IMG/VR virus record: IMGVR_UViG_3300037264_008423
Location: 62,001-126,000 of that record
Length of the DNA stretch: 64,000 nt
Strand: one strand, 5' to 3'
Below the pieces are notes generated by a model. The model ran no database searches and was not told the DNA's origin. It worked only from the letters and a program-made list of their open reading frames with translations. The position numbers and the translations under genes are program-made. Positions 1 through 39,428 of the stretch are shown piece by piece (positions within the stretch are counted from its first letter, which is position 1; the number at the start of each line of letters is the position of its first letter).

Positions 1-3000
1 CTGTCCGCAGCCGGGGTGCAAGTGGTGCAGGCAATGGAAGAAGTGCGCCCCGCGACCCGGCACCCGCGCACCGTGGGCGTGGGCTACCTGATGCGCGACC
101 AGGTGGGCTACGCGGACTATGTGGCCTTTGGCACGCTGTTTACGGCGGCTCCCGGTGTGGGAACCTACTGGGGCACGCTCAACGGCTATCCCTACCCGCC
201 CTACCAGGTGGAGTTCGAGCTGGAGCAGAGCTTCGGCGGCACCGTGGCAGTGTCCGAAATGCTGGCGGCGGAGGGGGATGTTCTGAATGCCGACCACCTG
301 CGCGTGGCCAGCGCCGCGCTCGATTTCCGGGGCACTTACGATTATCACAACTCCACTTGGATGATGGTCTTTCCAGGGGGATACGACCCCGCCTCGACGC
401 TGCGGGTTTACACCCACTACCAGCCGACTTCGACCGAGGTCGTGCGCGAGCAACCGCCGGTTTGGGCCGACCCGGTAACCATCGCGGTGAGCGGCGACGG
501 CGGCCTGCACAACGCCGCGCAACTGGCGGTGAATAACATGGTGAGCGGGTGGAACCCGGATGCCTACTTCTATACCGGTGATAACAGCTATTACGTGGGG
601 CTGCCCGGAGAGGTTTACACCAACTTTCTTTACGCGCGTCCTTTCATCGACGCCAAAAAGCTCTTTGTTTGCGCGGGAAACCACGACTTCTATAACCCGG
701 ATTCGCCCGTGGGCTACGAGCCGGTTCAGTCGGGCGAGATTCGGGACTACGGCCAGAATTACCAGGTGAAGCCCACCACACCGGGCGCGCACTACGTGGT
801 CTATAACGGCGGCACCTACCTCGGCAACCAGGAGTTTATCGGGGTGCGCGGGGTCACGGAATTTCTGGCCTATAACGGGGCTATCGTGCGCCGCCGCAGT
901 CGCGAGAACAACGGCTGGGACCTGTCCATCGAGACCAACTACCTCGATTACCTGCCCGGCAATGGCCGCTACTACCATGTGCGCGTCGGGCACGTGGAAT
1001 TGTTTGTGGTTAATGATGGTGTCAACCTGGTGGAAGATCCGGGGTTCCGCGACCAGAATAAGCCAGCGGAACCGGACGGAAATTGGTGCGAAGCGCCTTA
1101 TGCGCCGGTGGGAGCCGGAGTAAAATCACCTGCGGCTGGCAACCCCATCCTCGTGAGTCCAGGGATGACCTACACCGTGCATGCCTCGGAATCCTACGGC
1201 GACCTGGGCGAGCGATGGCGGCCCAACTACGTTGTCTATCAGAGTGGAACTTACCGTGATAATCAGAGCTTTACCGCTGGTCTTGGCACCACCCATGCCT
1301 TGATCTACGGGGAGCCTCGCCTGGACCCGGCTCCCAAGTGGGTGGTATTGCGCCAGGCGCGCCGTTACCGGGTGATCGCGAATCCCGGCAGCCACTATGT
1401 GACTTATAGCGGCACCAACTACTACGGAGGATCGGTGATCCAGTCCAGTTTTGATTCAGACATGAATGTGGCCACGACAACCGGGACCGTCCGGCTGGAC
1501 CGCCTCAACAGCGCCCAGGCCGCGCAGGTCAAAGATTGGCTGGCGCGTTCCACGGCTCCGTGGAAAGTGGTGATGTATCACCACCCCAACGAGCACACGG
1601 ACCAGTTTAACTCCGGTCATAAGTCGGGTCTGTATCCGCGCACCGATTGGCCGTGGCAAGAGTGGGGTGCGGATATCTTGCTTCACGGCCATGTTCACTC
1701 TTACGCGCGGATGCTGCGCAACGGGGTGACGGAAATTATTATCGGCATCGGCGGCGCGGGTAATAAGACCTTTAATACCGGTCCCGGCGCGTATCAAAGC
1801 CCTTACGTTCAATTTCAATACAACTATAGCCCGGTCAGCGAAGCGGCAGCGCCCACGAATTGGGGGGCGATGCTGTGGACTGTGACGCCCACGCGGCTCT
1901 ACGCGGAAGCTCGGATTCTTGGCAACGGTTTGATCGAAGCTTGGGAGCTGGCCAAGCCGGAACCCGTGCGTGCTTACCAGGCGCGACCGGAGGACGAGCT
2001 GGAGGGTGAACTGATGGACTTGTCCGACGAGTATGCCTGGCGGCGCGACCTGGTGCTGGGCGGGGAACTGGTGGATCATACCACTTATTATCCACCTACC
2101 CCTGACCTGCAAACGGTGAACTTGGGCCAGACTGTGGCGGTCTTCAGTCAGACGGGCGCTCAATACGATGTTACTTTGAGCAAGCCAGGGGCGGAGCCGC
2201 CCCGTTTTCAGTGGCAGGAGCGCCTCTTGTCCGACTACACGCCGGGCCAGATGGCGATTGCGTTCAGCGGGACGTTCCTGTCCCTGCCCGTGGTGGACCC
2301 CCGCCAGGAAAGCGTCCTGCCACGCCGCACGCTGGACCAGGAGGCGGTGAGCGGCGGCCTGTATGCGCGCAACCTGGGTGTCGATCATAATGCGGACGAT
2401 TTGGACTGGTCGATGCAGCCGGGCTGGCGGCTCTATCATTTCGGACTGGTTCAGGGCGTGCTGGTTGCCGATCCGGTGAAATTTTTCGGACCGCATCACC
2501 GCGATGGGCTGGTGGCCTGGTATCCGCTCAACGAGCATCCAAGAGAGGCTTTGATGTTGGCCGACCATTCGGCGGTCGGGGAGCAGACCGCTGTTCCCGC
2601 GCTGGACCCGGAGGATCGGCAGTATGATCCGCAGCGAGGTTGGTATTTGCGCCTGGCGGCGAACCGCGCGGTGAGCACGGTCAAGTCCCGGTCCATCTCC
2701 TCGGCGGTCAGCTTGGGGTTTTGGATTCGTCCCACGCAGACCGCAGCGCCGGAGTGCCTGCTGCGCCTGGGTCCGCTTTCACTTTACTTGGGCTTGATGG
2801 CCCTGCGCGTTTACGTCGAGCAGGCGGGAGTGGCGACCGATATTGTCGGGGCGGGGCTGAGTCCCGGCTGGAACTACGTGGCGATCACGGGCGATGCCGC
2901 GCGCCGCGTGTGGAACATCTACCGGGGTTATCCCGCCACGGCCCTGACCCTGGCCAACACGGTAACGGAGCAGGCGGATGCCTGGGGCGAGAGCGTGACC

Positions 3001-4599
3001 CTATCCTTGTTCGGAATGTCCGTGGGCTGCGACCTCCAGGATGTGCGTATTTGGAACACGGAAAAGACCCTGGCCGGGCTGGAACTGGCACGCTATCACG
3101 CTCCCCAGTCCACGGCGGTCCTCTACCGGCCTGCTTACCTTCAGGCGGTCAACGACTATGATCGCTACGGCGTGCGGGTCCTGGAAAGCGGCTGGGTGAC
3201 GCCGGAGCGCCTGCCTTCCACACTGGAAACGCCAGCGCAAGCCTGGGTGCTGCGCTACGCCTCGACCGGCGAGTATCAAGCGCAGTCCCGCTACCGGGAG
3301 ACGGGCCTGGGTTCCGGCAATACGCCCCCGGTAAAGCAATACCTGGGTTTGCAGTGGAACACCATGACGGGCGCGGGGACCACCGCCGTTTCCACCTGGA
3401 AGGGCGGGTTTATGGGCGTGAATGGCGCGTGGGATTTTGATAATCCGCCGCCGCTGGCGATGCAACTGCTCCAGTCGGGCAGCACGCGCTACGGCATCCT
3501 GCCCACCTGGATCAACACGGGCACCAGCGCCCCGTGGCCCAATCCGCTTCAGGCGACTAATCCGTGCCGGGATCGCATTTGGATCGAGGGCGATGATCGC
3601 TATCTTTACGAGGTTACGGTCGCGCGCAGTGGCACGGGCACGGTTCAGCTCCAGGCGGAGCGGCTGTTGCAGGTGCGCGCGGACGGTTCCCTGGTGCCCA
3701 CCTACACCGAGCAGCCCACCGGGGCGCAAGTGGCGCTGACCAGCGTCGTTCATGGCAACCAGCTTAGTGTCAGCACGCTCGGCCAGGTTTATGCCGCCCC
3801 TTACGCGGGAACGGTGACCTCGGCCCCGCTTTACCTGTATGGCAGCGAGGAGGTTAACGTGGACTTGTCGGGCGCGCACGCGTTTAACGCCTGGGTGGAG
3901 AAGAACAGCTACGGTATCGAGCGCGGGGCGGCCATTATTCAAGACAACGGCCAGATTGCTTTTGAGCTAGTCCAGGGCATGCCTGCGGGTTACTACCGCT
4001 TGGAGGTTACTTCCGGCAACGTGGGCCAGGCGGATGAGGACTTCGACGGCTTTCGGGTCTTGATCACCCTGGGCGACTACGCCTTCGAGGGCCGGTTGTG
4101 CCAGGGCCAGCGGGGCGCGGACTTTACCGCGACCGACACGTTTGAGTTTCTGCTGCCGCGCAGTTTGCCCGGCGCGCCAAGTTCCTGGCTGTTGACTTTT
4201 GGCTGGCTCAACGCCCTGCGGGATGAGCGCCACGGCACGGCGCGACGGCTCAAGATCAGCGCCGTGAAGGCGGTGCGGCTTTATACCCGGCTTTACGAGT
4301 TGGACTTGGCCGCAGGCGGCACTTCCCTGGTGGAATGGAGCACCAGCGGCACCGCGTTTCCGGTCACGCCAGGCGGCTGGCTGGTCACGATTACAAGCTG
4401 GGGCACGGCCCTGGCTCCCGTCCACGAGGCCACGGTCTATAGTAGCAACGACACGGTTCAGTCCCGGCAGCCGCTCGCGCACGTGCTGACCGCGACGACG
4501 GTGGAGCGCCGTGAGGATGTGATTTTGAACGGCTCCTTTGTGATTCCCGATCTACCCATTCCGGCTCTGCCAGCATACGGGGCCATCACCATCACATGA
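1..4599 (+). CDS. Large virion/baseplate-like protein with a calcineurin-like metallophosphoesterase domain and a LamG/ConA-like domain; probably 5'-partial
   Basis: Frame open from base 1 (first GTG at 16, 1527 aa). Metallophosphoesterase motifs occur in order: AVSGDGG, FYTGDNSY, CAGNHDF, MYHHP, LLHGHVHSY. LamG-like segment LVAWYPLNE...SLGFWIRP...WNYVAITGD...LQDVRIWN. Confidence 0.7.
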   Translation: MSAAGVQVVQAMEEVRPATRHPRTVGVGYLMRDQVGYADYVAFGTLFTAAPGVGTYWGTLNGYPYPPYQVEFELEQSFGGTVAVSEMLAAEGDVLNADHLRVASAALDFRGTYDYHNSTWMMVFPGGYDPASTLRVYTHYQPTSTEVVREQPPVWADPVTIAVSGDGGLHNAAQLAVNNMVSGWNPDAYFYTGDNSYYVGLPGEVYTNFLYARPFIDAKKLFVCAGNHDFYNPDSPVGYEPVQSGEIRDYGQNYQVKPTTPGAHYVVYNGGTYLGNQEFIGVRGVTEFLAYNGAIVRRRSRENNGWDLSIETNYLDYLPGNGRYYHVRVGHVELFVVNDGVNLVEDPGFRDQNKPAEPDGNWCEAPYAPVGAGVKSPAAGNPILVSPGMTYTVHASESYGDLGERWRPNYVVYQSGTYRDNQSFTAGLGTTHALIYGEPRLDPAPKWVVLRQARRYRVIANPGSHYVTYSGTNYYGGSVIQSSFDSDMNVATTTGTVRLDRLNSAQAAQVKDWLARSTAPWKVVMYHHPNEHTDQFNSGHKSGLYPRTDWPWQEWGADILLHGHVHSYARMLRNGVTEIIIGIGGAGNKTFNTGPGAYQSPYVQFQYNYSPVSEAAAPTNWGAMLWTVTPTRLYAEARILGNGLIEAWELAKPEPVRAYQARPEDELEGELMDLSDEYAWRRDLVLGGELVDHTTYYPPTPDLQTVNLGQTVAVFSQTGAQYDVTLSKPGAEPPRFQWQERLLSDYTPGQMAIAFSGTFLSLPVVDPRQESVLPRRTLDQEAVSGGLYARNLGVDHNADDLDWSMQPGWRLYHFGLVQGVLVADPVKFFGPHHRDGLVAWYPLNEHPREALMLADHSAVGEQTAVPALDPEDRQYDPQRGWYLRLAANRAVSTVKSRSISSAVSLGFWIRPTQTAAPECLLRLGPLSLYLGLMALRVYVEQAGVATDIVGAGLSPGWNYVAITGDAARRVWNIYRGYPATALTLANTVTEQADAWGESVTLSLFGMSVGCDLQDVRIWNTEKTLAGLELARYHAPQSTAVLYRPAYLQAVNDYDRYGVRVLESGWVTPERLPSTLETPAQAWVLRYASTGEYQAQSRYRETGLGSGNTPPVKQYLGLQWNTMTGAGTTAVSTWKGGFMGVNGAWDFDNPPPLAMQLLQSGSTRYGILPTWINTGTSAPWPNPLQATNPCRDRIWIEGDDRYLYEVTVARSGTGTVQLQAERLLQVRADGSLVPTYTEQPTGAQVALTSVVHGNQLSVSTLGQVYAAPYAGTVTSAPLYLYGSEEVNVDLSGAHAFNAWVEKNSYGIERGAAIIQDNGQIAFELVQGMPAGYYRLEVTSGNVGQADEDFDGFRVLITLGDYAFEGRLCQGQRGADFTATDTFEFLLPRSLPGAPSSWLLTFGWLNALRDERHGTARRLKISAVKAVRLYTRLYELDLAAGGTSLVEWSTSGTAFPVTPGGWLVTITSWGTALAPVHEATVYSSNDTVQSRQPLAHVLTATTVERREDVILNGSFVIPDLPIPALPAYGAITIT

Positions 4600-5036: not shown

Positions 5037-6244
5037 ATAATGTTGGTGATGCGAAAATTTTTAGTGTTCCGGGCGGCGCTGTCAACGGCAGCATCACTTA
5101 TGTGTGGTCGTTTTGGGACAATGACGTGAGGGCGACCCGCGAACCCTTCGTGGCTAAAAAGCTGAACGTGGGCGGAGCTGGCTTGCCGGTCTCTTGCGAA
5201 TACAGCGACGGGTTTGGCGTGAGCGGCCTCCTGAACACGACGATCACCGTGAACGCGCCCCCGGTGATCGTGGGCGCGCCCACCATCAGCGTGAACGACG
5301 CGCTCTTTCCATTCACGACCACCCTGACTTCCGTCACGTATGACCCGGAGGCGGCGGGGGCGCTGGCCTACGCCTGGTATGAGGGTGCGAGCGCGTTGGG
5401 CGCGGGGGTCACGGTGCTGCTGAGTCCGGGCACCTGGCAGAATAGCTTGACCCTGGCGGGAGTGTCCGCCAACCGCACCCTGACCCAGGAGATCACCGAC
5501 GCAGGAGCGGGAGTGACCCGGATGGATTACGCCGTGCGCGGCAGCGCCGCGACGGGCTTGATGGGCGGCGGGGCGGCGGTGGGCAGCACGATCACCCCCA
5601 CCGCGAGCAATCTGCCGGAAGTCATCATCGGCCCCGATCAGCGGGTGACCTTTACCGCTTACGCTCAGGACCGGGCGGCAGGCCAGTTGAGTTTTGCCTG
5701 GGAACTTAAGACCGAGGATGGTTGGGCCGCCGATTACAGCCTTACCGACGCGCCAGTCCAGTTGGCCAACGGCTCTTACCGCAGCCAGCTTTCCCGTCCG
5801 GTTTACGCTGAAACGCCCGGCCTTAAAGTAGCCCGTTGCACGGTCACCAACCTGGCGACCAGCCAGACGTTATTAATCCGCAATCCGGTCCGGCTTGTGG
5901 CCGCCCAGTATCCGGTGATCACGCATATTGCCACGGACGCGGGGTTGGTCGGCGGCAATTACCAGGTATTGCGTGACAGCTACGTGCATTTTACGGGCAC
6001 CGCCACGGATGCCAACCATCTGCTGTTGAACTACCGTTGGGACTTTATTCAGCCGCCAGGGCTGACGCTCTACGGTCGCTCCGTTATGCTTCGGCCCGAT
6101 CAGCACGCCTATTACGATCAATCCGCCCTGTTCGCCGGGCCGCTGCCCATCACCGGCGACTTGACGGTCACGGACCGCTTTGGGAAGAGCGCCACGGTCG
6201 CCATTCAAAGCTTTGTGACCGTTCAAGTGTGGGCCACGGCTTAG
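5033..6244 (+). CDS. Putative structural protein with Ig/PKD-like beta-sandwich repeats
   Basis: 403 aa, Thr/Gly/Ala-rich, with PKD-like motifs (LAYAWYEG, LSFAWEL, VHFTGTATDANHLLLNYRWDF, LTVTDRFG). Confidence 0.55.
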   Translation: MNNVGDAKIFSVPGGAVNGSITYVWSFWDNDVRATREPFVAKKLNVGGAGLPVSCEYSDGFGVSGLLNTTITVNAPPVIVGAPTISVNDALFPFTTTLTSVTYDPEAAGALAYAWYEGASALGAGVTVLLSPGTWQNSLTLAGVSANRTLTQEITDAGAGVTRMDYAVRGSAATGLMGGGAAVGSTITPTASNLPEVIIGPDQRVTFTAYAQDRAAGQLSFAWELKTEDGWAADYSLTDAPVQLANGSYRSQLSRPVYAETPGLKVARCTVTNLATSQTLLIRNPVRLVAAQYPVITHIATDAGLVGGNYQVLRDSYVHFTGTATDANHLLLNYRWDFIQPPGLTLYGRSVMLRPDQHAYYDQSALFAGPLPITGDLTVTDRFGKSATVAIQSFVTVQVWATA

Positions 6245-10036: not shown

Positions 10037-10221
10037 ACCCTGTCGGAGCGTTGTTTTGCGCCGAAACCAGACCCCGTGAGTCGGCATTTGCACTCTGCCG
10101 TGGCGTCTGGAGCGAGGCGGAAAGTGAAGTGGTTCGGGTCCAAAGTTTGTGCAGGCTATGCGAGTATGGACACCGGATACGTCCGCTGGTTCGGTTTACC
10201 CGCGCCCTGCCCCGACAGGGT
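10037..10221 (+). ncRNA. Putative structured RNA containing a delocalised CRISPR-repeat copy
   Basis: Bracketed by a 10-bp inverted repeat ACCCTGTCGG (10037-10046) / CCGACAGGGT (10212-10221), with internal stems. 10142-10164 AAAGTTTGTGCAGGCTATGCGAG matches the 3' 23 nt of the array repeat at 21/23. Confidence 0.6.
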
Positions 10222-10235
10222 TTTGTATTTACGGT

Positions 10236-13200
10236 GTGCAGTTGGAGAATTTAGACGATGACGTGAGCGTGAAGGATCTGGCGGACTATCCGCGCTACCT
10301 GATCCGCAACCCTCAAGGCGACTACTGGTCCAATGACTGGGGATGGGTGGACTACGCCAGCGCCGACATTTTCAGTCACCTGGAAAAAGAGCGGTTCGAC
10401 CTGCCTTCGGAGGGTCAATGGGTTCCCCTGGCCGAATCCCGTCCGGTTATTGGTTTCCCCGGCAATGACTTGAAGGCGCTCCTGGGAGAGGATTTTGTAA
10501 ACAAAGCGGACGCCTTCCTTCAGGAGCAGGGTATGCTGTGCCTCCTGGAGTGGCACCCGCAGGGCCGTCGGGTGGGCCAGGCCCAGGCGGCGGGTCAGGC
10601 GCTCACGGCGCGCTTGAGCCTGAACAGCGCCGACAGCCAGCTCTTGCGCCGCGAGGGGAGCCTGAAGCTTTTAGATCAGTTGCGGGAGAGCGTGCGCGGG
10701 TTTCTGCCCAAGAGCGCCGAGAGCCGGGTCCGGGTGGTTCCCCAGCGTCCCCAGTATGACCGCTGGAACGACCGCTGGAACCTGGAGCTGGTGGTCTTGG
10801 AGGCGTCCGAGGACGACTTGGAGTCCAAAGAGGTCTATTTTGACGATGATCCACCTGAATTTGCCGCTCCCCAGGGCCTTAGCCCGGAGGGAGAGCGCGC
10901 CCGGCAGATCATTGTCCAGGTGCTTCGGCGCAATGGCGATCTGGATTCACGCGGTCAAAAGCATGTTTTCTATACCCCCGAACAATGGGCGCTAAAGGCG
11001 GATGAGCATGTTAAGGACGGGGTATTAGTGGTCGTTCACGATGGCGGCAGCCACGCTCCTTACTTTCACATGTCCTACGCGGCTGAATTAATGCTGAGCC
11101 GGATGGACCTGGCCCTGCGCCGGGAGGGATTTCAAATTTACCCCTACGCCCCTCATTACTCGGTGATTGCTCCGGTGGAACATGACGAGGCTAACCAGTG
11201 GTTTGTGCGCCAGATCGAGGATTGGTTCCAGCGAAACCCGGACCCGGCTGCGGTGCCCGGCGAGGAGCCGCCGCCCCCGGCAGCCACAGGGAATGTCCCG
11301 GAGAGCTTGGAGGACGATGACGATGTAAACTGGAAGGACCTGCAACTGCCGCTGGACAAAGAGGCGGCGATCCGGCACGTGTTTCGGCAGGCGGGGCTGA
11401 AGATCACGTCGATTCAGGAAGTGCCTGAAGACCAGGACTGGGGTGAGCTGGGGCACGCCCAGCGCATCATCGTCACCCGTGTTCCGCCCAATCCCGATCA
11501 GCCCTGGACTACGGACATAAACGCGTGGGAGGCAGTCGATGAGTTTTGTTTACGAATCAAGTCGGCCCTCTATGAGATCCTGGACACGGATGACATCGAG
11601 TGGCTGAGAAACTGGGGCCTGGAGGACCAAGCGCCGGAGGGCCGCCATTGGTATATCTGGTGGTATATCGGCGACCCGGACATCAAGGAAGAGCGGGAAA
11701 TGAATGAATCGGACGAGGACGACTTCGACGTGAAGGACTACTCGGACGACATCCCGCAATCGGATGACTTCCAGGCTTACCTGCTTCAGCGCGGATTTCG
11801 CAAGCTTTCGGGTCAGATGGGAGACTACTTCAAGAAGCTGCCTGCTGCTTACGCGCGGGTTCGGGTTTATCAGTATCCCAACTATGTCAGCTACCTGCTG
11901 GGCCTGAAGGAGGGCAACCACTGGTTTAAGTTGAGCGAGATGACCAACGCCTACCGGGTCCTGTCGGTTTTGCAGCAGCGAGGGCTGTTCGACGTGCGGG
12001 AGGGCCTGGACGAGGAGTTTGGAGCCGATGACGACCCGGAGCTGTATCTCACGCCCACGCCGAACCTTCAGGAGCGGTGGAATCAGTTCGAGGCGGCCTG
12101 GCGCAGTCAGTGGGCGCTCATACAGCGCGGGGTTAATTTCGGCCAGCGCACCGCTTACCTGGAGGGGATCATGCCCTCGCACCTGCGATGGCGCGCCGCG
12201 TTCCAAGAGGTTCAACGGCTCGTTTACGAGCACTTGGGGGGCGGACGCATCGCCGATTTCAAGTATCACCGGGATGGCTACGTCCTGTTTCACATCTACG
12301 ACCTGGGCGGCGTGGTGGAGAGCGAGGCGGAGAGTGAGGCGGATGATGTGGACTGGAAGGAGATCTCTTCCTATCCCAAGCCCAGCGCGCGGGAGGTCCG
12401 GGAAGCCATGAAGCGCCGGGGGATCGTCTATAATCGCCTGGTGCGCGGCAAGGATGTGGTGACCTTCCTGGGCTGGTTTAAGCGGGGTCAACTCGAACTG
12501 GATGTGCTGGCCCTGTTGCGGGAAGCGGCGGCGGAAGCGGGTCTTGACCAGGAGCACGTCCAGTTTTTCTATATGCCCGGCGCGGGTGAGGTCGCGATCA
12601 TCGCGGCGCGGACGGGCCTGTTGGAAAGCGAGGAGGATGAGGACTTTGACACTAGAACCTTGAAGGATGTGTCTGAAACTGGCAAGTTAGTGCCGGAAAT
12701 TGTGGCGGCGATGATCAAAAATGGGGTCATCCATATGATGGTTCGCAGGCCGTGGCAGCCCCCGCCCCACGACTTGCTGCTTTTTATGGGCTTGTGGCAG
12801 GCAGGCAAGACGGACCAGGAGGCCGCCCAGGTTTGCGCGGCGATCCTAAGAGATTTGCGCATTCCCATTACTTCCAGCTTGGACGACTGGTTCAACTATA
12901 TGCCCGGCTCCGGCGATTTCGACCTGGCGCTGCCTGCTTACCTGGTCTTGGACTGGGAGAGGTATGTGGTGGAATCCCAGGCTGGCCTGGTCCAAAAGAT
13001 CATCGAGGCCCAAGGCACGGTTCTAAACGTGCAAGTGGCAGACCGAGAGGAACTTGTCACGATTCAAGGCGAATGGAAGCCCGGAGCCACGGTTCAAGCT
13101 CTTGCCGAGGCCATTAGCGTGGATGCCAATCGGATTCAGTATGACGCCAAAAATGGCGAATTTACGGTGCTGGCAACCCGGCAAGCCCTTGTGCAAGAGG

Positions 13201-14765
13201 ATCAGGCGGATGGCAAGGCCAGCGACACCAAACGGGTCGCCATTGTGGCGGTGTTTCGGCAGAAGCAGGACGATCCCGCCTACGAGTGCCTGGTCTGCAA
13301 GCGCGAGGGGCCGCCAGCGGAGGGCGAATGGGTGATCCCAGGTGGTCATGCCGAGGAGGGCGAGGAGATCAAAGTCGCCGCGCGGCGTGAGTTGCAGGAA
13401 GAGGCGCACGTGGACCTGGGCGACCTGACCTTTGTTAAGACCATGCCCAATGAGACGGGGGACTTGGAAGTCCATGTCTTTGGAGCGATCTTGCCGGAAG
13501 GGGAGAGGGCCAAGGCCGGGGATGACGCGGAAAAGGTGAAATGGCTGCCCCTGGACGATCTGCCCAAGCTGAGCCTGGATAATGACAATTTGATCCGGGA
13601 AGTGGCCGAGGCGATGGAACTGCAACGGCTGCCCTCGGTGGACGAGAGCCTGCCCCCGCGCCTGGCCGACCAGATTCGGTCAAAGATAGCGGCCCTGAAG
13701 CCGCGCCGCGCGAGCCGCGCCGGTATGAGCTTCGAGGTTCAACAGCCAGAGGGATTTGTGGATCGGCTCATCGAGGGGATTGAGCGGGAAGCGGAGCAGT
13801 TGCAAGCCGACGCTCAGCCCGAACTGCGTCTCATGGACCTGATCGAGGATGCCTACAGCCAGACGGGCACCTATTTGTTTCCAGACGACCAGCAGGACGT
13901 GGAGCGATTGGCGCGCGTGCTGGTTCCTTTATTCAAAAAACCAGCCGGACGGCGGATCAAGGAGAGCGCGGACGCTCCCCCGCGCTATGGCACCGTTACC
14001 GACGAGGTAGTGCCTGCCCTGGAACAAGCTCTGGTGGAGATCTTTGGCCAGCGTTATGACTGGCTGGTGCCCCACGTGATCCAGCACATGGACCCGGAGA
14101 TCTCTTTGATCGCGATGGAGGGTGATCGCGTGATCGGTTTCTACATCCTGGGCCGCCGTTCGATCTTGGACGGCGTTAAGAGCGAGCACCTGAAGCCCAC
14201 TGAGGATTTGAAGCCCTATCGGCAGCGCCAGGGCATTGAGGGGGTAGCCCTGGGCATTGTGCCGGATCGCCGGGGCACGGGCCTGGGCAGCCGGTTCAAA
14301 GACTATCCACAAACCCTGGGCGCGGATTATATGTGGGGTCTGCAAATGCATGATCTGGATAACCTGAGCCACTGGCTCAAGCGCCGCCGCATTGTGGCGC
14401 GCAACCCGGAGATGGTCGCGACCCTCCAGGACTTTAAACCGGGGGCGGTAGCGGAGGCCAGCGAAGAGGATTTCGAGGCCAAGGACTTGGAAGATGATTT
14501 GCTGAATGACGAGCATTTTCAAAAGTTTGCCCAGGAGCACGGCCTACTCTACCACCCTGGCGCTAAAATGGTGCGCGACGTGCTGGATAATGTTTATGGT
14601 TCCATTTGGTTTAAGACCGGCCCCTATTTAAATCGGGAGGCCACGGTCCGCCAGTGGACCCAGGTGTTTTCCGACTATTTCAAGATCGATCCCGCCCGGA
14701 TGAAAGTGGCCTATTACCCGCCCAGTGGCGACATTATGGTCATGGTCACGAATCTGGTTCTGTAG
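10236..14765 (+). CDS. Modular polyprotein-like protein with 7 acidic tag linkers; cargo includes Nudix and GNAT domains
   Basis: Likely start GTG 10236 (TATTTA-N4-GTG). Nudix box GGHAEEGEEIKVAARRELQEEAHV at about 13341. GNAT motif A VALGIVPDRRGTGLG at about 14245. Recurring E(S/A)-acidic-KD tags. Confidence 0.75.
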   Translation: MQLENLDDDVSVKDLADYPRYLIRNPQGDYWSNDWGWVDYASADIFSHLEKERFDLPSEGQWVPLAESRPVIGFPGNDLKALLGEDFVNKADAFLQEQGMLCLLEWHPQGRRVGQAQAAGQALTARLSLNSADSQLLRREGSLKLLDQLRESVRGFLPKSAESRVRVVPQRPQYDRWNDRWNLELVVLEASEDDLESKEVYFDDDPPEFAAPQGLSPEGERARQIIVQVLRRNGDLDSRGQKHVFYTPEQWALKADEHVKDGVLVVVHDGGSHAPYFHMSYAAELMLSRMDLALRREGFQIYPYAPHYSVIAPVEHDEANQWFVRQIEDWFQRNPDPAAVPGEEPPPPAATGNVPESLEDDDDVNWKDLQLPLDKEAAIRHVFRQAGLKITSIQEVPEDQDWGELGHAQRIIVTRVPPNPDQPWTTDINAWEAVDEFCLRIKSALYEILDTDDIEWLRNWGLEDQAPEGRHWYIWWYIGDPDIKEEREMNESDEDDFDVKDYSDDIPQSDDFQAYLLQRGFRKLSGQMGDYFKKLPAAYARVRVYQYPNYVSYLLGLKEGNHWFKLSEMTNAYRVLSVLQQRGLFDVREGLDEEFGADDDPELYLTPTPNLQERWNQFEAAWRSQWALIQRGVNFGQRTAYLEGIMPSHLRWRAAFQEVQRLVYEHLGGGRIADFKYHRDGYVLFHIYDLGGVVESEAESEADDVDWKEISSYPKPSAREVREAMKRRGIVYNRLVRGKDVVTFLGWFKRGQLELDVLALLREAAAEAGLDQEHVQFFYMPGAGEVAIIAARTGLLESEEDEDFDTRTLKDVSETGKLVPEIVAAMIKNGVIHMMVRRPWQPPPHDLLLFMGLWQAGKTDQEAAQVCAAILRDLRIPITSSLDDWFNYMPGSGDFDLALPAYLVLDWERYVVESQAGLVQKIIEAQGTVLNVQVADREELVTIQGEWKPGATVQALAEAISVDANRIQYDAKNGEFTVLATRQALVQEDQADGKASDTKRVAIVAVFRQKQDDPAYECLVCKREGPPAEGEWVIPGGHAEEGEEIKVAARRELQEEAHVDLGDLTFVKTMPNETGDLEVHVFGAILPEGERAKAGDDAEKVKWLPLDDLPKLSLDNDNLIREVAEAMELQRLPSVDESLPPRLADQIRSKIAALKPRRASRAGMSFEVQQPEGFVDRLIEGIEREAEQLQADAQPELRLMDLIEDAYSQTGTYLFPDDQQDVERLARVLVPLFKKPAGRRIKESADAPPRYGTVTDEVVPALEQALVEIFGQRYDWLVPHVIQHMDPEISLIAMEGDRVIGFYILGRRSILDGVKSEHLKPTEDLKPYRQRQGIEGVALGIVPDRRGTGLGSRFKDYPQTLGADYMWGLQMHDLDNLSHWLKRRRIVARNPEMVATLQDFKPGAVAEASEEDFEAKDLEDDLLNDEHFQKFAQEHGLLYHPGAKMVRDVLDNVYGSIWFKTGPYLNREATVRQWTQVFSDYFKIDPARMKVAYYPPSGDIMVMVTNLVL

Positions 14766-15293: not shown

Positions 15294-16985
15294 ATGAATA
15301 CGGAAAGACAAGATCAGCCCTCTGTGAATCCCGCTCCGGCCAGCGTAGATGAAGCGCAAAGAGCCAAGCAGGAAGCCATCGCCCAGGCCAAAGCCAAAGC
15401 CCAGCGGAAGCAGGAGGAGAAAGAGGCAAAAGGTTTGCCCCGCTCGATTAAGCTTAAGCCCAAGCGCGTGCTGGAGTGGGAATGGGGTCCCTACCTGTAT
15501 AAGCAGCTTCGGGTGTGGGAGGCGACGACTTTTATGCGCCGCGAAATCTACCGTGGCCTTTTCAACGCGGACACTCCTCCCTATAAGACGGGGCACGACC
15601 GGTTGCAGCCTCACACCCAGGTATTCGGAGCCATCACCACTTACGCGAATCGGCTTTTAAAAGATTTTTCCGCTAAAGTCCAAATCCTGCCTGCCTACAT
15701 TACGGGGTTCATGACCAAAATTTATGCCGAAGACTATGCCGCTCGACGGGAACACATTTTGGTGACGGGCCTGGACTTTATTCCGATAGGCGGCTTTCCC
15801 GCGCAAGTGGAGATTCGGGCGGAGAACGTGGAGATTTTAGTTAACCCCGAAGATCCTCGTGGTTTTCTGATCCGGGTGCCTTTTTACCGCCACGATGTGC
15901 CGACCAAAAACGGCGGAACGAAATCAGAGGTCGTTTACGTGACCTACGTGATTGATCCCAAGGGGGACTGGCAGACGGGCAGCAGCCTTAAAAAACAGCA
16001 CCGCGCCAGCGCGTTTGACGGCACGCCTTTGCTGGAAAGACTGCGGACCGGCGAGCGCACGATGGGATCGTTGAAAATTTTGGGCAAGTTCCGATACGCT
16101 TCCTCCAGCGAGGCGAGGCTATTGCGGGAACAGGAGGACCGGGTGAGGGAAGCCAAAAAGAAAAACGATCCCTCGGTTGTAAAAATACCCTGGGAAATCA
16201 CTGATCCTTTCACGGTGGATGGCGTATTGCTGCCGCCCTATAAGCGCGACAAGTATAAGCGGCGCGTGGTTTACGAGCCGGTCCTGCAACTGTCTTACTA
16301 TCTGCCGCCGCTGCCCCCGGAGCGGGAACGGCGCGGCTTGGCCTTCTGCTACACCGATCCAGATCGGTTTATGGCGATCAAGATCCATCAAAATTTTGAG
16401 CGGGACCTGGACGACGAGCTGGTCCGTAGATCCTTGTTTATGTCGCAGAAGATCTATGAGCGCCACAAGCTGCTGGACCCCCACAACAAGATGTCGGTCA
16501 TGTCCCCGGAGCAAATCCGTGAGCTAGTTGAGCTTTCGGATCGGCGCTACACCGGTATTCGCCGAATGACGCGCTTGTTTGGGACGGGAGGCAACTCTAA
16601 AATGAAGGGCGTGAGCCAGAAAATCAAGGGGATTACCCTCCATTTTGACCATTCGGTAGTGAAAGCTTTCATGAACTTGGTCATCGAGCGCAACGCCGCC
16701 GAGTTTTACTATTTTGACGCGGACCGGCGCTACATGGAGCACTATCACTGGTTCATTCTCAGGGACTATTTTGCGCAGGCGTGCAAGGTGCTCCAGATCA
16801 AGTTCCATTACCTGGAGGGCTGGCAATTTAGCGATTGCCAGGCGGAGGAGAAAAAAGGCGGTAACTGGGACTTTAATAAGATTTACTTGCGGATACGCGG
16901 CGAAAAATCGAGGCGGACTCGTGCCGAGCACGAAAAATACAGTCAGGAACAGTATGAAAGGAGCTTAGCAGATGAAAAACCTTAG
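15294..16985 (+). CDS. TnpB/Cas12-like (type V-like) CRISPR effector, RuvC apparently inactivated
   Basis: 563 aa from ATG 15294, about 0.85 kb from the array. Segment order parallels TnpB/Cas12: N-terminal RSIKLKP strand; last WED strand VLQLSYYLP; RuvC-I-like strand RRGLAFCYTD (GID position reads AFC); basic bridge helix; FDHSVVKAFMNLVIERNAAEFYYFD (RuvC-II region); YHWFILRDYFAQACKVLQIKFHYLEG. No CxxC finger or RuvC-III. Confidence 0.7.
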   Translation: MNTERQDQPSVNPAPASVDEAQRAKQEAIAQAKAKAQRKQEEKEAKGLPRSIKLKPKRVLEWEWGPYLYKQLRVWEATTFMRREIYRGLFNADTPPYKTGHDRLQPHTQVFGAITTYANRLLKDFSAKVQILPAYITGFMTKIYAEDYAARREHILVTGLDFIPIGGFPAQVEIRAENVEILVNPEDPRGFLIRVPFYRHDVPTKNGGTKSEVVYVTYVIDPKGDWQTGSSLKKQHRASAFDGTPLLERLRTGERTMGSLKILGKFRYASSSEARLLREQEDRVREAKKKNDPSVVKIPWEITDPFTVDGVLLPPYKRDKYKRRVVYEPVLQLSYYLPPLPPERERRGLAFCYTDPDRFMAIKIHQNFERDLDDELVRRSLFMSQKIYERHKLLDPHNKMSVMSPEQIRELVELSDRRYTGIRRMTRLFGTGGNSKMKGVSQKIKGITLHFDHSVVKAFMNLVIERNAAEFYYFDADRRYMEHYHWFILRDYFAQACKVLQIKFHYLEGWQFSDCQAEEKKGGNWDFNKIYLRIRGEKSRRTRAEHEKYSQEQYERSLADEKP

Positions 16986-17655
16986 CAACAACAGCCAAGC
17001 GGTGGACCAGAACCTCGACCATCAGCTTGAGGCGCTATTCAAGAGCCAGTCGGCAAGCACGGAGAAAATTGCCTGGGTGATGATGGAAATGGTGGAGCGC
17101 CTGGATGGGGGATGGGTCCCGCGCAATGTCGCGGCGGTTACGGACCATATCCAGACCAAATATCGGCTCAGCAAGTTCATGATTGAAGGTTATTTTCGCG
17201 TGGCGAGAAAACTAACCTTGGTGGGGGTTTTTAGCGAGAAAAACGCCGCCGCCAGGGTGGTGCAGTTCTTCAGTATTGACGCCCAGCAGCAGGCGTTGGG
17301 CGGTATCCCTGTTTACCAGGGACCCGGTAAGAAAGCCAAGATCGAGAAGCTGCACCAGATTGAGGACCGGGAGGTCCCGATGATTTTTGACGAGCGCCTG
17401 CGCAAAATCCGTTCTGTGGAGGAGCAGGCGGCTTACACGGCGCTCGCCATGCGCCAGGTTGGACCGGTCAGCAAGTGCGCTGTGCGGTTTTGGCCTAATG
17501 GTGTGTATAAGCTGATTAAGAAAGCGAGCCGCGTGGATCAAGCTTACTGCTCTGACGCGCTGAAGAGACGGGGAGTGGAGTCCGTTCCTGATTACGCGCT
17601 AAGGGCGCAGATTGACCGGGACATCGAAAAAGAATTTGGCTCTGAAAAGGGCTGA
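16972..17655 (+). CDS. Hypothetical protein translationally coupled to the effector
   Basis: 227 aa, overlaps the effector stop by 14 bp, and is the last gene before the array. Confidence 0.75.
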   Translation: MKNLSNNSQAVDQNLDHQLEALFKSQSASTEKIAWVMMEMVERLDGGWVPRNVAAVTDHIQTKYRLSKFMIEGYFRVARKLTLVGVFSEKNAAARVVQFFSIDAQQQALGGIPVYQGPGKKAKIEKLHQIEDREVPMIFDERLRKIRSVEEQAAYTALAMRQVGPVSKCAVRFWPNGVYKLIKKASRVDQAYCSDALKRRGVESVPDYALRAQIDRDIEKEFGSEKG

Positions 17656-17657
17656 AA

Positions 17658-17834
17658 AATACACCGTATCGCAGCGGTGTTTAGCCAGGGGATCTGCGCC
17701 TGCGCCGATTCCTTGGGGAAGTCCTCCACACTGCGAGCGCCGTCGATTTTCGGCTTAACTTTAAGTTGGCCGTGCGGCGGCGCTCGCAAACTTGCTCTTT
17801 GACAATTGATGCTGAGTGACTTGCGGGGTGCGGG
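17658..17834 (+). ncRNA. Putative tracrRNA/scoutRNA-like structured leader region
   Basis: Hairpins 17661-17680, 17685-17716 and 17732-17788 (14-bp outer stem). CCTCCACA at 17723-17730 is complementary to repeat nt 20-27. Confidence 0.5.
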
Positions 17835-18405
17835 GTAGCACTGCTTAAAAGCTTGTGGAGGCTATGCGAGTCCACCTTTACTATATAGCTGACGGGTGAA
17901 AAGCGGGTATCACCGCTCAAAAGCTTGTGGAGGCTATGCGAGGCTGAGCTGGATAGGCACTCGGAAGCGGTCGTGCAAGTAGCACCGTTAAAAGCTTGTG
18001 GAGGCTATGCGAGCGCAGCTACCCCTAAGACCTTTTCCACCGGCGTTCTGTATCACTGCTTAAAAGCTTGTGGAGGCTATGCGAGATGACCATTGCGCCC
18101 ATGATGTGGCGCTGCGACTGGTATCACCGCTTAAAAGTCTGTGGAGGGCTATGCGAGAAGGTGGCTTACGGATACGCTGCTTAAAAGCCTGTGGAGGGCT
18201 GTGCGAGATGAGTGTCCCGAAAGCATTGAAGTATCACTGCTTAAAGGTTTGTGGAGGGCTATGCGAGAATAAAGTTTAGGAACGACGTGAAATTACTGAG
18301 GTATCACTGCTTTAAAGCTTGTGGAGGCTATGCGAGGATGATCTGGTCGTAACCATACGGCGCTTTGTAGTATCACTGCTTAAAAGCCTGTGGAGACTAT
18401 GCGAG
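17835..18405 (+). CRISPR. CRISPR array, 9 repeats / 8 spacers, consensus GTATCACTGCTTAAAAGCTTGTGGAGGCTATGCGAG (36 bp)
   Basis: Repeats start at 17835, 17907, 17979, 18050, 18121, ~18171, 18231, 18301 and 18370. Spacers are 36, 36, 36, 35, ~13, 23, 33 and 33 nt. Orientation inferred, not proven. Confidence 0.95.
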
Positions 18406-18430: not shown

Positions 18431-18453
18431 CGCAATCTCCACAAGCTTTTAAG
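18431..18453. repeat. Anti-repeat (inverted copy of the CRISPR repeat core)
   Basis: CTCCACAAGCTTTTAAG (18437-18453) is the exact reverse complement of repeat nt 10-26. Pairing extends with bulges to CGCA at 18431. Confidence 0.85.
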
Positions 18454-18476
18454 TGTTAAAAATAGTTCTACCGGAC

Positions 18477-18893
18477 ATGGAACAGCTCATTGCCCATTTA
18501 GTCGGAGATTACGTGCTACAGAGCCAGTGGATGGCCAATAACAAAGACCGGGAGAACCTGCCCTGCCTGCTGCACTGCCTGCTCTACACGGCCTGCTTCC
18601 TGGCGCTTACCGGGTCCTGGAAGGCCCTGCTGGTGATCGGCGTGACCCACTTCCTGATCGACCGCTTCCGGCTGGTCCGTTACCTGATATGGGCTAAAAA
18701 CTGGCTGACGCCCCTGGGCTACTACCCGTGGAGCGCCTGCCAGAGCACCGGCTACCTGGATGTGGAACAGGACCCCATCGGGCTTAAGGAACCGTGGGAC
18801 CAGCGGCCCATCTGGCTGCGCGTGTGGCTCTTGATTATCACTGACAACACCCTGCACCTGGCTCTCAACTACGCGGCCCTCAAATATTTGTGA
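18477..18893 (+). CDS. DUF3307-family membrane protein
   Basis: LIAHLVGDYVLQSQWMA...K, LLHCLLY, THFLIDRF and DNTLH motifs. Confidence 0.8.
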   Translation: MEQLIAHLVGDYVLQSQWMANNKDRENLPCLLHCLLYTACFLALTGSWKALLVIGVTHFLIDRFRLVRYLIWAKNWLTPLGYYPWSACQSTGYLDVEQDPIGLKEPWDQRPIWLRVWLLIITDNTLHLALNYAALKYL

Positions 18894-34617: not shown

Positions 34618-35646
34618 TTAGTGAGCATAGGGGTAGTATTGAGATTTGCCGTTGATAAAAGAAGTAAACGTAAAGTTACAGGGATTTTCCGAGGCATAGA
34701 CCAGGCCTTGGTAGCTTGGCCGGATCTTTTGGTCCAGCCACGGGGCGCGGTCCGCCGCGTCGAGGTAATCCAGGTGAGTCACCATAATTTGGTCGGGCAC
34801 AGCCAATTTAAGGCTATAGTCAAAATCGGCATTGGACCAGGTGAAGACGCGGCGTTCTCGACCGGTTACCGTGCCGTGTTCCGGGGGGCGCTTGAGCAGG
34901 GACCACGAGATCTCGGTGCCGCCCGTGGGACCGCTGTTGCCGCCCACGCGGATGGGGAACGTCCGGTAAACGCCCACGTAGTGCCATTGCAGCCGGGCCA
35001 GGCCGTTGCGCGCCACGGCGGCCTGGGGCAGGGTGGACCGGCTGGTCACGTAAGGGTAGTGGCCAAAATTGGTGTCCAGCAGAAGACCTTGGCCGCACTC
35101 GAAGACGCACGTATCGAAGTTACCGGGCAGGTCCTCAATCAAGTCCATATACTCCCGTGGCGCGAGCGCGCACCAGTCCGGGTTAACTTTTTTGATCCGG
35201 TGTCCGATGACGCACTCTTCCTGGCGAAAGACATGCTTGCGGTAGCGAGCCGCGCCGCCGCCTGTGCAGGTGCTCGCGATGCGCTCTCTTAGTTGAATGT
35301 CTTGTTCGGTCTGGACGCAGTTTTCGTCGCAATGAGCGGCGTTGACATGGATATACAACCGCGCGGGAGCTATTCCGTGGGCCGCGCGGTAGTCGCAAAC
35401 AGTGGACCAGTCCTCCGTCAGGACTTCCAAGTCAATGACGGCATCCGGTCCCAGGATCACCGCGTCGGCGAAAAAAGCTCCGGCAGGCAGGGCACGCAGG
35501 GAACCGGCGCGGCAGGTATGGCCGCTGTTGGGGGCGTTCTCTCCAATCACCACGGACCGGCCTTTGTGCTGTTGGAGCAGGGCTTCGGCCACGCAGCCTT
35601 TTCCCTCCAAGCCGTATTGTCCGCCGTAAACACAATAGCATCTCAT
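34618..35646 (-). CDS. Adenylosuccinate synthetase family (PurZ/PurZ0-like) protein
   Basis: GGQYGLEGKG P-loop, APNSGHT, FECGQGLLLD, HYPYVTS, FPIRVGGNSGP, GTVTGRERR, VTHLDY. The 342-aa length is typical of the short archaeal-PurA/PurZ0 type. Confidence 0.8.
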   Translation of the reverse strand: MRCYCVYGGQYGLEGKGCVAEALLQQHKGRSVVIGENAPNSGHTCRAGSLRALPAGAFFADAVILGPDAVIDLEVLTEDWSTVCDYRAAHGIAPARLYIHVNAAHCDENCVQTEQDIQLRERIASTCTGGGAARYRKHVFRQEECVIGHRIKKVNPDWCALAPREYMDLIEDLPGNFDTCVFECGQGLLLDTNFGHYPYVTSRSTLPQAAVARNGLARLQWHYVGVYRTFPIRVGGNSGPTGGTEISWSLLKRPPEHGTVTGRERRVFTWSNADFDYSLKLAVPDQIMVTHLDYLDAADRAPWLDQKIRPSYQGLVYASENPCNFTFTSFINGKSQYYPYAH

Positions 35647-38462: not shown

Positions 38463-39389
38463 CTATTTCACTTGAAGGTTGGGCGGAGGGCAGCCGTTGC
38501 AGGAAATTTGAGTAGTGATGGTCAGCCCCCATGCGGCAGCCTGCACTTTGCACGTCTCAAGAACTTCTGAATCAGGCTTGGAGATTGAGACCGCTGCGAG
38601 GCCGTGGGTCCTAGTTTCCTTTGTGCCATCGCCAATCCAGAGGCCGAAGAAGTAGGGATCAACTTCCGGGTTTGGACGTGTTGGAAAATTGACCATCGCT
38701 GGTTTGAACAACTTCCAGTTCATGTCGGGGCGATTCTGGTTTCGTGTTTCACTCAGAAGTTGATTCAGCGCGACATCACGGACTATGCCCTTGCGGTGGT
38801 TTGTTCCAGCTAAGGTCAAGACGTGAACATTGTTGCAGGTCCATGCCGCACCTTTGATGGGAACGATTTTGAACATCGGAGCTTTGCCCTGAGTTGTTGA
38901 GAGCACCCGCCGTGGTGATCCGTCTGGTCCCATCAAAAGGTCACCTGTCACGATGTCGGCGTTTCGTTTAATGGTGCCATCGTGCAGCAGGATAGGGACA
39001 TCGAGGCCAAGACACTTGCCGGTCCCCGCGCGAGCGCGCACCACGAGCGATCCGGTGCCGGAGTGGAACCATTTGAAGATGGCAATTTGCTCGTCGGACC
39101 AGGGATACTTGGTTTCGGGCAGCACGAACGAACGGGTGGTTTCGGCGGTTACAGCGGCTTGGTTCGGTTCCTGATACCAATTGACGGTCCAGGAGCCATT
39201 GATCAGTTTGGGACTGATGCCCAAGTCGTGGAGTTGGGGCTTGTGCGCGCGCCACAGGGACCAGAATGCGCCGTGCGGGATAGCTGTGCGCACTTGGCGC
39301 AGTCCGCGCGCGGTCTTGGCCAGGCGAGGCTGATTCCAGGCTAGCATCGCTTCCAGAGTTTCGTTCGTAATTTCGTTGGTCGTATTCAT
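38463..39389 (-). pseudogene. Truncated UvrD/Rep-like SF1 helicase interrupted by an incomplete intein
   Basis: WSDEQIAIF (Q motif), LVVRARAGTGK (Walker A), then immediately CLGLD...GDLLMGPDG.PRRV...CNNVHVL (intein blocks A/B) and PYFFGLWIGDG (LAGLIDADG block C). The stop at 38463 comes before any C-terminal HN or helicase motif II. Confidence 0.8.
38466..39014 (-). mobile_element. Intein N-terminal part (Hint-N plus first LAGLIDADG motif), truncated
   Basis: Cys1 codon at 39014-39012 directly after GTGK. Confidence 0.8.
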
Positions 39390-39399
39390 TCTGGTGATA

Positions 39400-39428
39400 A
39401 ATGTAAACGATTCTGATTTAGCCGTCAA
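39400..39428 (-). promoter_or_regulatory. Sigma70-type (early) promoter
   Basis: TTGACG-N17-TACATT on the minus strand. Upstream CACTTTCCCTGTTGAC is identical (16 bp) to the promoter at 6283. Confidence 0.75.

Follow-up and report, generated by a model that had tools for sequence, protein, structure and literature searches.

A phage-borne protein with a predicted Cas12f/TnpB fold is co-inherited with an orphan partner, an anti-repeat RNA and a CRISPR array

The 64-kb window analysed here, that is, the whole stretch of DNA under study, is part of the 238,436-bp IMG/VR contig IMGVR_UViG_3300037264_008423. On its + strand lie, in this order, a gene for a 563-aa protein with a predicted Cas12f/TnpB fold (effector A, 15294–16985), a gene for a 227-aa orphan protein (partner B, 16972–17655), a structured non-coding RNA in the gap between B and the repeats (17661–17790), and a CRISPR array (17835–18405). 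The window is phage-like, with tail-fibre and portal-like PHROG matches, several homing endonucleases and an intein, and it contains nothing cellular. A preliminary description of the locus, made from the sequence alone, had called A phage-encoded and devoid of adaptation or transposon genes, and both statements agree with our data. PADLOC and Pfam searches with the 67 open reading frames (ORFs) of the window returned 6 and 11 unrelated families, respectively, and no match to any cas or Tn7-like model. Transposition genes were likewise absent from the window and from the called genes of the related loci described below.

The ORF for A runs from an ATG at 15294, preceded by an AT-rich intergenic stretch, to the stop at 16985, and the public gene call gives the same 563-aa protein. 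Searches against Pfam, PHROGs, PADLOC, NCBIfam and PDB sequences (the last with phmmer and hmmsearch) gave no match for A. A, its relatives and the family profile were also compared with Pfam OrfB_IS605/OrfB_Zn_ribbon, NCBIfam, the PADLOC cas models and PDB Cas12f, and no match was obtained at E ≤ 1–10. To examine the fold, we used an AlphaFold2 model of A (predicted local distance difference test score, pLDDT, 74.5; predicted template modelling score, pTM, 0.59) as a Foldseek query against the PDB. All 46 matches at E ≤ 0.001 were Cas12, TnpB or Fanzor structures, and the top matches were exclusively Cas12f, TnpB or Cas12m/k/g. The best was AsCas12f (7wju_A; E 2.8e-13, probability 1.0, target-normalised template modelling score 0.48, approximately 500 aligned columns). 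The nuclease-dead dCas12f structure 9n9c_A was matched as well (E 1.1e-9). The predicted structure has the bilobed WED/REC plus RuvC (RNase H-like) architecture of type V effectors. Thus, the AlphaFold and Foldseek check suggested in the preliminary description, in which the absence of WED and RuvC folds was to count against a Cas12/TnpB-like protein, came out in favour of that assignment.

An exhaustive phmmer search over 1.84 billion cluster representatives yielded seven relatives of A with 24–36% identity. A metagenome scan added a few further loci. Overall, about eight distant relatives were found, and the effectors of the family have 460–563 aa. A word-indexed protein search of A returned the query alone, low-complexity words having apparently swamped the candidates, and family-pattern scans found nothing in IMG/VR or in the GTDB genomes. 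No relative of A was detected among GenBank phages by tblastn and blastn. The RNA stem pattern occurred in 71 stretches of IMG/VR, and A or B was encoded in none of them except the contig of the window itself. Wherever a related locus is of sufficient length, A is followed by B (L001/L004, L002, L003/L005/L007/L008/L010/L088, L006, L009, L011/L012 and L013/L014). The complete order A, B, RNA, array is kept in L001, L006, L008/L010, L009 and L013, where homologous arrays lie downstream of A, as is characteristic of type V effectors. L002 has A, B and the RNA element together with solitary repeat handles in place of a regular array, and L011/L012 has the same three parts, with the sequence ending at the first repeat-like handle. 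The proposed link of A to a CRISPR array is therefore borne out, and it is kept in distant relatives. The array had been placed next to A, however, and this applies only loosely: the array is real, but the 227-aa B gene and a 179-nt structured region lie in between. The obligate partner gene B, the anti-repeat RNA and a lone repeat copy at 10141–10164 had gone unnoticed.

Partner B, identified by synteny and alignment, starts 14 nt before the end of A. In all related loci that reach that far, a B protein of about 210–237 aa is encoded directly 3′ of A, and stop and start overlap or abut. The B proteins of the window and of L001 share 30% identity (E 5e-23). The AlphaFold2 model of B has a pLDDT of 77.8, with values above 90 over about the first 160 residues, and its fold found no match in the PDB or in BFVD. 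Pfam, PDB profile, PHROG, PADLOC and NCBIfam searches assigned B to no family, sigma factors and helix-turn-helix (HTH) proteins included, and a search with a B profile recovered only members already known. At their C-termini (17640–17655 in the window), the B proteins share a conserved final motif, G-x-S-P/Q-A, which lies immediately ahead of the structured RNA. Constraints at the RNA or DNA level, and not protein function, might explain some of this conservation.

The RNA region of the window has a minimum free energy of −71 kcal/mol (z = −5.4). It consists of two small hairpins, a single-stranded GGGGAA followed by the anti-repeat CCTCCACA (17723–17730), and a stem of ~13 bp (about 17732–17789) that encloses a further hairpin. 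The element is kept in all loci. Across eight lineages, an outer stem of ~11 bp and the inner hairpin were 89.9% paired, compared with 33–47% in controls with slid partners. Eleven pairs showed compensatory changes, and none of 500 shuffles reached this level. Because of its G·U wobbles, the RNA was placed on the + strand. The single-stranded anti-repeat, 6–8 nt long and located 5′ of the stem, has its complement in the local repeat core, with which it covaries. We found it by direct reading of the conserved leader; RNAduplex anti-repeat scans were uninformative. In six lineages, cognate complementarity extends over 8, 7, 7, 7, 6 and 7 nt at homologous positions. The pairs of anti-repeat and repeat core are CCUCCACA and UGUGGAGG in the window, GACCACA and UGUGGUC in L008, UACCGCC and GGCGGUA in L002, UACCAC and GUGGUA in L009, CACCACC and GGUGGUG in L001, and CACCAAC and GUUGGUG in L011. 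Rfam contained no credible match. Judged by its layout, the putative RNA looks like a trans-activating CRISPR RNA (tracrRNA) of short complementarity, that is, scoutRNA-like.

Just upstream of the array lies a leader motif, TGCTCTTTGACA (17793–17804, + strand; family consensus TGTTCTTTGACA), which is conserved in the family alignment and occurs once in the window. No sigma-70-type promoter was called at this motif, which may serve as the promoter of the array or form the RNA's 3′ end. The array itself, delineated by a repeat search and by comparison with the homologous arrays of relatives, comprises nine repeats of ~36 nt on the + strand (consensus GTATCACTGCTTAAAAGCTTGTGGAGGCTATGCGAG), conserved mainly over their 3′ ~24 nt. 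Its 16-nt repeat core matched the window nine times versus 0.65 expected, and none of 100 shuffles reached nine. The repeats start 72, 71, 72, 71, 50, 60, 70 and 69 nt apart and are separated by spacers of 36, 35, 36, 35, 13, 23, 33 and 33 nt. Much longer arrays were found in relatives, with 35 units in L008 and 39 in L010, which are collinear but for four internal units extra in L010. L007 and L088 encode near-identical effectors, yet each has unique spacers at the leader end, and there is no positional conservation among spacers. Only the 3′ ~22–25 nt of the repeat are strongly conserved; towards the distal units its 5′ part degenerates and the period falls to ~48–62 nt. This pattern fits a CRISPR RNA (crRNA) with a repeat-derived 5′ handle and a guide of ~20 nt.

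Searches for protospacers covered GenBank phages (arrays of the window, L010 and L013) as well as the DNA of the window and the related loci (all arrays), and none was found. The 20-mers of window spacers 1–4 matched IMG/VR only in their own contig. A 20-mer of spacer 4 matched 10 GTDB genomes; we attribute these matches to chance because none of them extends past 20 nt.

Two further copies of repeat sequence lie outside the array. A perfect reverse complement of 17–18 nt of the repeat core (18436–18453 in + strand coordinates; inverted repeats I1–I7) follows the last repeat after 30 nt and reaches up to the first nucleotide of a DUF3307 gene (18453–18893). It is absent from L001, L008, L010 and L013, and it may fold on the last repeat and thereby sequester it or terminate transcription of the array. 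The second copy is the lone 3′ handle at 10141–10164 (+ strand), which is identical to the repeat at 21 of 24 nt, overlaps the start of a 1538-aa NUDIX ORF and reads V-Q-A-M-R-V in frame. In its centre, GCAGG replaces GGAGG, and the anti-repeat would pair less strongly with it. The 18-mer downstream of this handle has no second copy in the window. L002, which represents the P0003 lineage, contains dispersed or closely spaced intergenic solo handles (…GGTAATGCGGG) at 3856–3944, 4393–4413 and 6070–6119, and one of its handles overlaps a gene start reading V-A-A-M-R-V, like the lone handle of the window.

The preliminary description had rightly recognised the 563-aa ORF and located its motifs (GLAFCY at residues 348–353, 16335–16352; EFYYFD at residues 470–475; and YHWFILRDYFAQAC at residues 484–497), and it had derived from them an apparently nuclease-dead protein. 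The structural model and the family alignment led us to a different view of the active site. The RuvC-I strand LAFCYT comprises residues 349–354 of the model, and D355 (16356–16358) sits at its C-terminal end, the canonical RuvC-I position. The dipeptide TD after this strand is invariant, with YTDP in A and HTD(P/A) in 8 of 8 relatives covering the region. The supposed replacement of Asp by Cys was thus an alignment error: G-L-A had been aligned to G-I-D, and the invariant Asp lies two residues after GLAFCY. Strand 4 (EFYYF, residues 470–474) carries the canonical RuvC-II Glu slot at its C-terminal end. In A this slot holds D475 (16716–16718); P0005 and P0008 likewise have Asp there, and the remaining lineages have C, N or H. 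At the start of the strand, hence at a non-canonical spot, lies E470 (16701–16703), which is conserved in 10 of 11 sequences. The subsequent loop, MEHYHW in A and MPHFPW in the family, contains the invariant residues H483 (16740–16742) and W486 (16749–16751).

Strand 5 (residues 503–507) is followed by a short loop in place of the zinc finger. With three Cys residues and no CxxC pair, A has no zinc finger, as had been noted before; only 51 residues separate the end of strand 4 from D526 (16869–16871). D526 opens the last helix and is conserved in all lineages but one, so that RuvC-III, reported as missing, may be present. The P0003 lineage lacks both D526 and an acidic residue on the RuvC-II side, and the module is nevertheless kept. 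Judged from sequence and model, A has candidate acidic residues at all three canonical RuvC slots, namely the invariant D355, D475 in the variable slot, and the conserved D526. The invariant D355 and the near-invariant E470, H483, W486 and D526 are kept across 20–35% identity. Because the alignment of the family to TnpB with hhalign was not significant, these residue equivalences rest on secondary structure and conservation; the same alignment places the HTD strand on the G-x-D-x-G strand of TnpB, within two residues, and the family Trp on the TnpB Trp. In Cas12f, the TNB/zinc-finger insert loads substrate DNA. Its loss and the unconserved canonical RuvC-II slot are the only features of A that argue for lost canonical DNA cleavage, and nuclease deadness is not established.

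We interpret the locus as a phage-borne miniature type V-like module with four co-inherited parts, namely zinc-finger-less A, coupled B, the anti-repeat RNA and the array, and we consider this reading slightly more probable than its negation. It builds on the fold, the four-part synteny, the covariation within the RNA and between repeat and anti-repeat, and the turnover of spacers. That A loads RNA and targets DNA, and what B contributes, we infer from these observations; because no spacer matches were found, the same applies to the target, the protospacer-adjacent motif (PAM) and the biological role. The array would be transcribed on the + strand from the leader, and the crRNA would carry the conserved 3′ ~22–25 nt of the repeat as 5′ handle, followed by a guide of ~20 nt. 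The handle would pair with the small RNA over 6–8 bp, and the duplex would be bound by A, perhaps as a dimer as in Cas12f. The favoured function is that of an RNA-guided DNA-targeting complex of A, probably B, crRNA and small RNA, which would seek out DNA complementary to its guide, whether in rival mobile elements or in the host, and serve in conflicts between mobile elements.

RuvC-dependent processing of pre-crRNA has been reported for Cas12c, Cas12j and Cas-lambda (PMC12141684). Given that the RuvC-I Asp of A is invariant over deep divergence and the insert is gone, the most economical explanation is a metal site kept for pre-crRNA processing. It is most likely that the acidic pocket (D355, D526, and E470 or D475) has retained metal binding and serves this reaction. 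Loss of the zinc finger (TNB) would then make interference mainly binding-based, by a block of transcription or replication, with B possibly as an added effector. Binding-based interference has been described for Cas12c and Cas12m. DNA cutting by A through a rearranged site is nearly as likely as interference mainly by binding.

In a related proposal, B would make up for the activity lost from the zinc-finger-less A, the two proteins together constituting a new RNA-guided machine, and through the solo handles at gene starts (10141–10164 of the window; L002) this complex would also regulate the phage's own genes. B could then be a new nuclease, a blocker of replication or transcription, or a factor for spacer integration. 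We regard this proposal as rather improbable. If true, type V would gain a new subtype, one that depends on an accessory subunit and acts in defence as well as in regulation.

Several observations weigh against the four-part module. There is no sequence-level link of A to any Cas12 or TnpB in the Pfam, NCBIfam, PADLOC and PDB hidden Markov model searches, and the alignment behind the AlphaFold2 model of A contains 11 sequences only. Comparison of the A family by hhalign with E. coli InsQ alone was not significant, and neither was that with a TnpB profile of eight sequences (InsQ and seven phage TnpBs; Prob 1–2%). L013 has no clear anti-repeat at the homologous place. The window array is short and irregular, with spacers of 13 and 23 nt, variant repeats and an extra G in three repeats, and it may be decaying. 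Finally, no protospacer was found for any spacer.

The most serious rival explanation takes A for an active miniature nuclease with a rearranged RuvC site (D355, E470 or D475, H483 and D526) and no zinc finger. It would be a conventional CRISPR weapon against mobile genetic elements comparable to Cas-phi, Cas-lambda and Cas12r, and B would be a helper, for instance in loading, PAM reading or adaptation. The invariant RuvC-I Asp, the conservation of D526, E470 and H483, and the acidic residues in all three canonical slots of A speak for it, and long arrays with spacer turnover are typical of immunity. In their TnpB/Cas12 survey, Altae-Tran et al. documented conserved, probably active rearranged RuvC sites and described zinc-finger-less TnpB clades, some of them virus-specific (PMC10691335), and other phage type V effectors cut DNA (PMC12141684; Cas12r preprint). 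However, most members of the family have C, N or H in the canonical RuvC-II slot, the insert that loads the substrate in Cas12f is gone, and the P0003 lineage keeps the module without its RuvC-II-side acidic residue and D526. An active nuclease of this kind is possible, but we lean against it.

A second rival is an RNA-guided gene regulator like TldR or dCas12f, in line with the preliminary description. A nuclease-dead A, together with B, would repress or activate specific genes of the phage or the host, and lone handles at gene starts would act as built-in guides or operator-like RNA sites. The lone handle at the start of the 1538-aa ORF, the dispersed solo handles upstream of genes in L002, which has no regular array, and the obligate partner, reminiscent of dCas12f with sigma-E or HTH proteins, are compatible with this idea; C-terminally truncated, CRISPR-linked dCas12f proteins exist (PMC13472631). 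Fixed regulators would hardly be expected to have 35–39 diverse spacers with turnover at the leader end, however, and neither a spacer nor a lone-handle "guide" matches the window or the related loci. Moreover, B matches neither a sigma or HTH family nor any fold, and the lone handle is mismatched in the middle of the anti-repeat pairing site. We consider a regulator of this type improbable. The repeats might also be iterons or centromere sites for A or B in replication or partition, with the Cas12f-like fold of A being incidental. Irregular spacing (50, 60 and ~70 nt), degenerate window repeats and helix-rich, HTH-like segments in B would fit such sites. On the other hand, the spacers are unique and show one-sided turnover, whole repeat-spacer blocks are gained or lost, only the 3′ part of the repeat is conserved, the structured RNA contains a covarying anti-repeat, and A has the fold of an RNA-guided nuclease. 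On account of the leader-end spacer differences between near-identical loci and of the block-wise gain and loss, we rejected this explanation, which appears very improbable.

Among known systems, Cas12f (V-F, Cas14) and TnpB are closest to the module. They provide the best structural matches of A over nearly its whole length and share with it the miniature size, the RuvC-I Asp at the end of the first strand and the W-containing helix after RuvC-II. Further common traits are an array whose repeats have a conserved 3′ handle, and an anti-repeat on a structured RNA of its own, which is predicted for the module. In contrast to these proteins, A has no detectable sequence similarity to them and no C4 zinc-finger/TNB insert, and the canonical RuvC-II Glu is not conserved in its family. 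The module's predicted RNA has an anti-repeat of only 6–8 nt and is thus nearer to a scoutRNA than to the extended tracrRNA duplex of Cas12f. The module also differs by its obligate orphan partner and by its confinement to phage-like contigs with no cas1, cas2 or cas4 nearby. On sequence and on the zinc finger, the A family is not a member of Cas12f. The dCas12f-sigmaE systems, CRISPR-linked dCas12f and TldR (PMC13472631; bioRxiv 10.1101/2023.11.30.569447) resemble the module in their shortened C-terminus and tightly linked partner. Unlike those partners, B is no recognisable sigma factor or HTH protein, and the identity of the partner excludes the A family from dCas12f-sigmaE. Furthermore, the RuvC-I Asp is invariant in the A family, the arrays of relatives are long and turn over as opposed to a few fixed guides, and the module resides in phages and not in Bacteroidota chromosomes.

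A non-coding RNA of short complementarity beside the array is shared with the scoutRNA systems of Cas12c and Cas12d and with Cas12m, and so, plausibly, is the mode of action, with a RuvC pocket for RNA processing and interference by binding. Cas12c and Cas12d are much larger than A, however, and Cas12m keeps the zinc-finger region; none of them was the top structural match, and none has a partner B. Cas-phi (Cas12j), Cas-lambda and Cas12r are likewise single small effectors encoded with an array on (huge) phages without an adaptation module, with a probable role in conflicts between mobile elements. They differ from A as proteins of 564–760 aa that rely on crRNA alone; they are active RuvC nucleases whose motifs can be recognised in the sequence, and they have neither an accessory protein nor an anti-repeat RNA. 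Cas12r, a 564-aa active nuclease of Thermus phages with crRNA only and its catalytic D at position 238, was rejected as an identity for A; according to the preprint, the repeat-derived part of its crRNA is at the 3′ end. TIGR-Tas was rejected because the fold of A is Cas12f-like. The Cas12k transposons (V-K) differ in that tnsB, tnsC and tniQ do not lie beside A; none of these genes is among the 67 window ORFs, in agreement with the earlier view that A is not Cas12k-like. A literature search for the repeat sequences of the module found no paper, and the A family may be among the unnamed V-U variants of large surveys. We conclude that the module probably represents a new variant of type V that is carried by phages and combines an obligate partner with a scoutRNA-like RNA.

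Other genes of the window are listed here for completeness. Two giant ORFs of ~1530 aa each (16–4599 and 10149–14765) are mostly devoid of recognisable domains, apart from a calcineurin-like phosphoesterase domain in the former and a NUDIX domain in the latter. A Hint/intein-associated homing-endonuclease domain, a signature of selfish elements, is encoded at 38466–39428 (− strand), and HNH_3, AP2, LEM-3-like GIY-YIG and endonuclease VII domains are further selfish-element domains within the ORF set. At 34621–35646 (− strand) lies a gene for a 342-aa adenylosuccinate-synthetase-like protein (PF00709, E 6e-28). A counterpart with 48% identity lies at 1581–2579 of L013, ~3.4 kb upstream of the A homologue (L013/L014). 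The P-loops of the two proteins read GGQYGLEGKG (window) and GGQYGSEGKA (L013). The Asp of PurA is absent from both. The protein resembles phage PurZ, so these phages may make 2-aminoadenine (Z) DNA, which, if made, could bear on self/non-self discrimination by the phages' own guide system.

With 460–563 aa and no zinc finger, the members of the A family are among the smallest array-linked proteins with a Cas12 fold. Their size is relevant to the limits of reduction of the TnpB/Cas12 scaffold and to compact genome and epigenome tools. The conserved, non-canonical active site offers a clean test of whether a rearranged RuvC cuts DNA, processes RNA, or does neither. Spacer turnover in phage arrays without adaptation genes reopens the question of how phages acquire spacers. 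Finally, B, strictly co-inherited and lacking detectable relatives, and the scoutRNA-like RNA suggest that phages recruited the TnpB scaffold on a separate occasion.

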